A stretch of 63,751 bases of DNA, counting the filler, from Octopus bimaculoides (lineage: Eukaryota), in NCBI RefSeq assembly GCF_001194135.2. It is 9 parts of 8 records of this genome, joined end to end, with 100 filler letters (N's around TTAATTAATTAA, not from the genome) between each part and the next. Parts side by side here need not be neighbours in the genome. Positions count along the whole stretch, not along the records: positions 14,705 to 20,092 come from NC_069009.1; 8 more parts are not named here. One strand, written 5' to 3'. This document shows positions 15,310 through 15,608 of the stretch, one piece after another. Both the position numbers and the translations under genes were made by a program. Below the pieces are notes generated by a model. That model searched no databases, was not told the DNA's origin, and was given only the letters and a program-made list of their open reading frames with translations. Each line of letters starts with the position of its first letter. Positions within the stretch are counted from its first letter, which is position 1.

Positions 15310-15608
15310 GTTTCTCTCCTGTATGAACAAGTTTGTGTTTAGTTAGGCTGTTGTTCTTCAAAAATGATTTACCACATATCACAATGATACAGATTTTCTC
15401 CTGTATGAATACGTTTATGAACATTTAAGTCTGCCTTTCGAGAGAATCATCTCCTGCAGATATCACACTCATGTGGCTCCTCTCCCGTATGAATAAGTTT
15501 GTGCAAAGTTAATCTGTGATATTGAGTGAATGATTTACCACAGATATCACACTGGTATGGCTTCTCTCCTGTATGAATAAGTTTGTGTCTATTTAATGGA
15601 CTAACATG
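15310..15608 (-). pseudogene. Inverted, disabled partial copy of C2H2 fingers 8-11 of the neighbouring gene
   Basis: Reverse complement aligns to 17656-17956 with 12 substitutions and one 2-bp deletion; TCA>TGA stop. Confidence 0.95.

Follow-up and report, generated by a model that had tools for sequence, protein, structure and literature searches.

Does a short, dead copy of part of a zinc-finger array, which differs from the neighbouring gene largely at DNA-reading codons, record rapid evolution of binding specificity, an origin from a paralogue, or a silent donor of alternative codons to the gene beside it? We addressed this question in Octopus bimaculoides, within a window of 63,751 nucleotides (filler included), of which positions 14705–20092, from NC_069009.1, hold both the gene and the fragment. 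Our analysis makes it fairly likely that the fragment is an ordinary pseudogene remnant within an octopod C2H2 zinc-finger cluster, sister to the corresponding segment of the present gene and bearing variation of the kind that separates paralogues.

The DNA at 14705–20092 is AT-rich, eukaryotic draft assembly interrupted by two runs of N, at 15790–16235 and 18530–18621. A poly-C2H2 zinc-finger gene occupies it, with an ORF at 16954–19404 on the plus strand (ORF call, finger parsing and Pfam). Taking a C2H2 array to consist of repeated C-x2-C-x12-H-x3-H units with TGEKP-type linkers between them, we found such an array in the ORF, with Pfam matches to PF13465 (E = 2e-141) and PF00096 (E = 5e-88). 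It contains 25 complete fingers and more hidden under the 92-N gap at 18530–18621, over which the frame is nominal. The finger consensus is HCDICGKSF...HTGEKPY, and the short N-terminus reads MEGKLCNN.... Pfam returned zinc-finger families only, with no KRAB, SCAN or SET domain (PF01352, PF02023, PF00856) in the ORF; an effector domain of the KRAB-ZNF or PRDM9 type is absent within 16954–19404. In a PRDM9-type minisatellite array the fingers are near-identical in DNA save at the contact codons, and here in-register 301-nt blocks of the gene are just 64–81% identical to one another. Entropy over the 25 fingers is highest at helix positions -1 to +6.

Several further features of the array were observed. 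Fingers 5–8 and 9–12 form a four-finger duplication inside the gene with 81% DNA identity (17320–17620 against 17656–17956), and fingers 13–16 (17992–18292) are a remoter repeat of the same block at 74–76%. Fingers 3 and 4 (17209–17376 region) are degenerate fingers in an otherwise canonical array: the conserved Phe is replaced by Leu in finger 3, and the conserved helix Leu by Ala in finger 4 (NNVATEH). The reading frame breaks past finger 25, and two finger-like units, each short of a Cys or His, follow in the other two frames at 19340–19515, representing either C-terminal fingers in decay or errors of the draft sequence. Upstream of the ORF, at 16590–16612, there is also a short (TGTC)n/(GT)n run.

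To which family the gene belongs is indicated by its protein matches and its surroundings. The matches of best identity (about 60%) are ZNFs of O. sinensis, O. vulgaris and O. bimaculoides. Upstream of the ORF, an exon-like element at 16314–16435 shares 77% identity with elements that precede two ZNF ORFs of O. sinensis, at 3729–3851 and 9597–9719 of locus L002. Its portion at 16330–16435 comprises a polypyrimidine tract and a TTTCAG acceptor followed by AATAGCAAATGACATTGGCATCAAAGAAT; this is probably a shared 5'-UTR exon, which would place the promoter and first exon further upstream, possibly past the fragment. Downstream, non-coding stretches at 19533–19710 and 19810–20092 match DNA beside Octopus ZNF genes at about 70–78%, in O. 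bimaculoides (L001), O. sinensis (L002, L004, L005) and O. vulgaris (L003), and are either part of the unit that was duplicated with the gene or members of a common family of repeats. Thus, the nearest relatives are Octopus ZNFs and the flanking elements are common to Octopus ZNF loci; together with the Octopus-like consensus and N-terminus, these elements assign the gene, on sequence grounds, to the octopod lineage-specific ZNF expansions. Albertin et al. (2015) reportedly described such lineage-specific C2H2 poly-zinc-finger expansions in octopuses. The octopus-specific C2H2 expansions comprise 104–495 genes (PMC12513265). On O. sinensis CM016888.1 (L002 20326–25389), H2A-, H2B- and H4-like histone genes lie less than 10 kb from a cluster of ZNF genes.

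The fragment spans 299 nt at 15310–15608 on the minus strand and is 95.3% identical to 17656–17956 on the plus strand (BLASTN and Smith-Waterman), which by finger parsing extends from the finger 8 helix to the linker behind finger 11. It therefore holds the finger 8 helix, fingers 9–11 and a TGEKP linker, about 3.6 fingers in all, and its conceptual translation matches zf-C2H2 and zf-H2C2_2 in Pfam (PF13465, E = 2e-28). It is inverted and lies about 2 kb upstream of the gene, the order and orientation of the two resting on scaffolding over the 446-N gap at 15790–16235. Both alignment methods give 12 substitutions and one 2-bp deletion between fragment and gene. One substitution creates an in-frame TGA in finger 10 (15447–15449, minus strand) where the gene has TCA (Ser), and the deletion (junction 15376–15377, minus strand; gene 17888–17889, in the region of the second Cys codon of finger 11) shifts the frame, which switches in the translation after ...NLYHCD. 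Homology to the gene ends abruptly at both fragment ends, inside the finger array, and the flanks have zero similarity to the rest of 14705–20092. Given the in-frame TGA, the frameshift, the lack of a start codon and the flanks unrelated to the gene, the fragment is a dead copy.

Two other origins were considered and rejected. A longer, decayed copy of the gene surrounding the fragment is ruled out since the flanks are unlike the rest of 14705–20092. An allelic or haplotig origin does not agree with a divergence of 4.7%, with mutations that disable the copy or with flanks unrelated to the gene, and is likewise ruled out. A processed retrocopy carries a 3' poly(A) tail and a target-site duplication directly at its edges; here there is no poly(A), the copy begins and ends within the finger array, and the copies of the direct repeat described below lie 151 nt and 32 nt off the fragment ends, not directly flanking it.

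How the fragment came to lie where it does may be recorded in its flanks. A 30-nt inverted repeat brackets it, with arms at 15207–15236 and 15617–15646 that are 87% complementary, share the exact core ACAATTAAACCTTGGGAGA and reach, on the right, to 8 nt from the fragment end. A repeat search also found the 14-nt perfect direct repeat TCTATCCTATTCAT on the plus strand at 15145–15158 and 15641–15654, the second copy abutting and overlapping the outer end of the right arm. Shuffling puts both repeats well outside what these flanks would give by chance: an exact 19-nt inverted match from one flank to the other turned up in 0 of 2000 shuffles, and a direct repeat of 14 nt in 1 of 2000. These bracketing repeats suggest insertion or templated repair, by one of three candidate routes. 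About 480 bp may have been inserted with duplication of the target; a small inverted-repeat element may have picked up a stretch of ZNF sequence; or repair by template switching may have copied neighbouring sequence into place, partly direct and partly inverted. A transposon-captured fragment has terminal inverted repeats, an adjacent target-site duplication and several genome copies. In this case the inverted repeat does bracket the fragment, the direct repeat abuts the right arm only, and no copies of the repeat core were found in 127 kb of Octopus loci. A metagenome scan with the 18-mer inverted-repeat core gave 23 matches, all without similarity past the 18-mer and hence attributable to chance. 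Rfam and tRNA scans of 14705–20092 found nothing, and the flanks are not recognisable as a tRNA-derived SINE or known RNA. An (AT)n microsatellite at 15761–15789 leads straight into the first assembly gap.

We then consider where fragment and gene differ. Read from gene to fragment, the changes are 17683 T>C (F>L), 17707 C>T (H>Y), 17749–50 GT>AG (GTA>AGA, V>R, finger 9 +3), 17758–60 AAT>TTG (N>L, finger 9 +6), 17782 C>G (Q>E), 17816 C>G (TCA>TGA, stop), 17901 T>A (synonymous), 17915 G>A (AGC>AAC, S>N, finger 11 +2) and 17918 A>G (AAC>AGC, N>S, finger 11 +3). Finger 9 starts at codon 254, which makes its V and N positions +3 and +6, and finger 11 starts at codon 310, which makes its S and N positions +2 and +3. 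The preliminary description had counted seven of the twelve substitutions in these four contact codons, all of them between 15340 and 15520. Alignment and parsing reproduce this count exactly, and the seven fall inside that interval (15348, 15351, 15504–15506 and 15514–15515). On the minus strand, the finger 9 changes form a 12-nt patch at 15504–15515 that holds five of the twelve substitutions (fragment AGA TTA ACT TTG, gene GTA TTA ACT AAT), and the +2/+3 codons of finger 11 at 15347–15352 read AAC AGC (N S) in the fragment and AGC AAC (S N) in the gene.

The statistical weight of this pattern depends on what is counted. Per nucleotide, enrichment at contact codons has P = 7e-4, with nucleotides that are not independent, and random placement puts five substitutions within 12 nt in 618 of 200,000 trials (P ~0.003). 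Per codon, 4 of 9 changed codons are among the 16 contact codons of 101 (P = 0.033); the value becomes 0.11 if the S>N and N>S swap is taken as a single event (3/8), and 0.13 for the broader helix set (-1, 1, 2, 3, 5, 6). The clustering is weaker than "7/12" implies because five of the substitutions form one 12-nt patch, and the enrichment is thus real but modest. Of the 12 substitutions, 7 are transversions, a share not typical of point mutations that arise independently. Only one difference is synonymous, in 59 synonymous sites, giving pN = 0.046, pS = 0.017 and pN/pS = 2.7. This ratio lies above 1 but short of significance (11 versus 1 differences, Fisher p = 0.47).

To assign the changes to a lineage, we used the in-gene block 17320–17620 (plus strand), which runs from the end of finger 4 to finger 7, as the outgroup to its 81% identical paralogue 17656–17956. 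The outgroup has the gene's state at 17758–60 (AAT, finger 5), at 17816, and at 17915 and 17918 (AGC-AAC, finger 7), so that the fragment's states there appear derived. Conversely, the fragment's state at 17707 (Tyr), 17782 (Glu), 17901 (TCA) and 17749 matches the outgroup or the finger consensus. The fragment's TGTGGTAAATCATTTTTGAAGAAC is the same as in finger 7 (17554–17577), which marks the gene's TCT at 17899–17901 as derived. By this polarity, which concerted evolution between fingers 7 and 11 could mislead, three of the four contact-codon changes map to the lineage of the fragment, not to that of the expressed gene, and V>R at finger 9 +3 is probably also on the fragment's lineage. The gene's lineage appears to have acquired three non-contact changes (Y>H, E>Q and one synonymous). 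Since both lineages changed, the fragment would be a sister of the present gene segment and not a fresh copy of it. Divergence is low and similar per lineage, with about 5–7 events in 299 nt on the fragment.

We also searched for a source of the contact changes, beginning with the DNA at hand. No donor of the contact variants was found inside 14705–20092, finger 13 being a near match only. Words of at least 10 nt across AGA, TTG or AAC-AGC have no genuine in-register match elsewhere in 14705–20092 and recur there only as chance minus-strand 10-mers, which places any donor outside 14705–20092. The finger 9 patch AGATTAACTTTG has two mismatches to finger 13 (GGATTAACTATG) and five to the gene's own finger 9, and the codons flanking it stay of the finger 9 type. 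The fragment-type contact sequences are AGATTAACTTTG in a finger 9 context and AACAACAGC in a finger 11 context, and the former looks like a short templated replacement or an inheritance from a paralogue with a different finger 9.

Comparison within the gene puts this pattern in proportion. Between paralogous blocks of the gene, 30–38% of amino-acid-changing codons are at the four contact positions, where 16% are expected, and between gene and fragment the count is 4 of 8. Because the same enrichment separates the in-gene blocks, the concentration at contact codons is the default signature of related but non-identical fingers and would point to no special mechanism. This agrees with earlier findings on poly-ZF families, octopus among them: in recent poly-ZF duplicates, contact residues are the most variable and are positively selected, and short gene conversions occur among paralogues (PMC2604467, PMC10547256).

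A close paralogue or orthologue was sought in protein and DNA sets. Word-indexed protein searches with the fragment, the first 525 aa and the 816-aa ORF gave matches of just 30–61% identity among those listed, none of which was longer than about 1.75 times the query. An exhaustive phmmer search of 1.84 billion representatives yielded nothing above 61% identity, and in both kinds of search vertebrate ZNFs swamped the matches. In five Octopus ZNF loci (127 kb from O. sinensis, O. vulgaris and O. bimaculoides, reached via four short matches), ZNF DNA was just 72–83% identical and the fragment flanks had no match, and an exact-pattern metagenome scan for the fragment's finger-9 helix gave zero matches. 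The search for the closest paralogue, recommended in the preliminary description, thus leaves the adjacent gene as the best match. Its suggestion that the fragment came from a paralogue nevertheless fits the data best; it is the source that we infer, and none carrying the fragment's contact codons was found in the sets searched.

On the reading that we favour, duplication within a zinc-finger array would have left a non-functional relic, sister to the present gene segment. After the split, the gene would have altered at its three non-contact sites, while the fragment's lineage would have gained N>L, S>N, N>S and probably V>R, plus the stop and the frameshift. The contact changes may have arrived as multi-nucleotide patches, like the variation that separates paralogous fingers across the gene. 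They could have done so by one of two routes: the whole piece may have been copied from a close paralogue whose DNA-reading residues had diverged beforehand, or short patches may have passed from other fingers into the dead piece, with the conserved sequence around the helix providing homology. Insertion or templated repair would then have set the fragment in its inverted position, leaving the 30-nt inverted and 14-nt direct repeats.

Two considerations run counter to a paralogue source. The adjacent gene, only about 2 kb off, is the best known match, which favours a local origin, and the low and similar divergence of the two lineages makes a plain local copy with neutral decay numerically possible. 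In that case, templated repair or a replication template switch would have made an inverted copy of the gene's own 299 nt, which then decayed neutrally, the concentration at contact codons reflecting a few complex multi-nucleotide mutations and chance. We regard this account as possible but on the unlikely side. It agrees with the dead state of the fragment, with an enrichment that at the level of events reaches just P = 0.03–0.11, with a pN/pS not significantly above 1, and with flanks that hold short direct and inverted copies of nearby sequence, as template-switch repair would leave. It leaves unexplained why 3–4 of the 5–7 events on a supposedly unconstrained lineage strike the 16% of codons that read DNA, and why AAT>TTG and GT>AG, five changes in 12 nt and mostly transversions, look templated.

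If instead the expressed gene had changed adaptively and fast, in the manner of KZFPs or PRDM9, the fragment would preserve the old contact states. The preliminary description had offered such rapid evolution of specificity residues after duplication, and recent poly-ZF duplicates are well known to be positively selected at their contact residues (PMC2604467); V/R at finger 9 +3 is moreover not polarisable, and the gene has altered at three other sites. Fingers 5 and 7, however, agree with the gene at finger 9 +6 and finger 11 +2/+3, which makes the fragment the derived party at three of the four contact codons, and the polarisable changes on the gene's lineage lie outside the contact codons (linker or synonymous). 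For the expressed gene the proposal thus finds no support, and we judge it improbable.

A donor-cassette system consists of an array of silent cassettes together with donor tracts in expressed alleles. Applied to this locus, the inverted fragment would diversify the DNA-binding specificity of the neighbouring gene by passing short tracts to it through gene conversion, as the preliminary description had speculated. The geometry alone speaks for it, namely a promoter-less, inverted homologue about 2 kb from the array with differences at specificity codons amid conserved sequence. The fragment is instead a single 299-nt piece, the only ZNF-like stretch outside the gene in the sequenced part of 14705–16953, and it carries a stop and a frameshift. 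Gene and fragment share no over-long identical tract (longest run 71 nt, P = 0.37), the gene, read from a single sequence, has no fragment-type tract, and it is the dead copy that bears the derived contact states. The same contact-codon pattern separates any paralogous fingers, and hundreds of octopus paralogues make such relics expected (PMC12513265, PMC5363842). We therefore find nothing in the data that bears out a silent donor, and consider this reading highly improbable. Equally little credence attaches to its stronger form, in which fragment and gene swap short tracts in the germline and the dead piece stores or feeds alternative DNA-reading codons; were it true, a family of transcription factors would be gaining new binding specificities in a cassette-like way.

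The two N gaps (15790–16235 and 18530–18621), the (AT)n run abutting the first of them about 180 nt from the fragment, and the dependence of adjacency and orientation on the scaffold might suggest that reads from a different ZNF paralogue were misassembled or mis-scaffolded. This is very unlikely, since the fragment sits in the middle of an unbroken stretch of at least 1085 nt, has unique sequence on each side, is bracketed by significant repeats, and with 4.7% divergence, a stop and a frameshift is unlike a collapsed allele.

Our preferred reading, a pseudogene relic with paralogue-type variation, sets the significance of the locus. Partial, inverted and broken copies are an expected by-product of the duplication and recombination that build the octopus zinc-finger family, and related fingers differ as a rule at the residues that read DNA, so the fragment as such matters little. 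Its value is modest, as a dated snapshot in which multi-nucleotide replacement of helix codons has occurred within 1–2% neutral divergence in this family, and its repeat-bracketed flanks may show how such pieces move. If alleles of the gene carried the fragment's tracts, that would bear on how poly-zinc-finger genes gain specificities so quickly.

Among known systems, Borrelia vlsE with its vls cassettes and the chicken Ig pseudo-V genes also place a promoter-less homologue near an expressed gene, with differences in 'variable' codons. Here, in contrast, there is one fragment and not many cassettes, no sign of tract transfer was found, no machinery for it is known, and what would be altered is a germline gene for a transcription factor rather than one for an antigen or a receptor. 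Pack-MULE or Helitron-type capture and templated break insertions likewise yield a short internal gene fragment with abrupt ends and bracketing repeats; in this locus the direct repeat does not adjoin the left arm, and 127 kb of Octopus DNA held no further copy of the repeat core. The recent duplicates of Emerson and Thomas 2009 (PMC2604467) resemble our pair in that the differences between close copies gather at helix positions -1, 2, 3 and 6. Our pair differs from them in that one copy is dead and bears most of the derived contact changes, so that selection on that copy would not be their cause unless the changes predate its death.

A structural parallel is offered by mammalian KRAB-ZNF clusters, which contain many pseudogenes, inversions and partial 'related genetic units' (PMC5363842). 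Relics there likewise consist of a truncated, sometimes inverted piece of array beside an intact gene, and arise amid duplications, deletions and inversions of finger-coding sequence, as here, whereas the octopus piece belongs to a different clade, lies beside a gene without KRAB, is very short (3.6 fingers) and is bracketed by short repeats. The gene itself is like the members of the known octopus C2H2 expansions, with which it shares long canonical arrays, the HCDICGKSF...HTGEKPY consensus, an N-terminus of the type ME(N/G)xLC and the lack of KRAB, SCAN or SET, and from which it stands apart in having no orthologue or close paralogue, at most 61% identity, in the protein sets searched.
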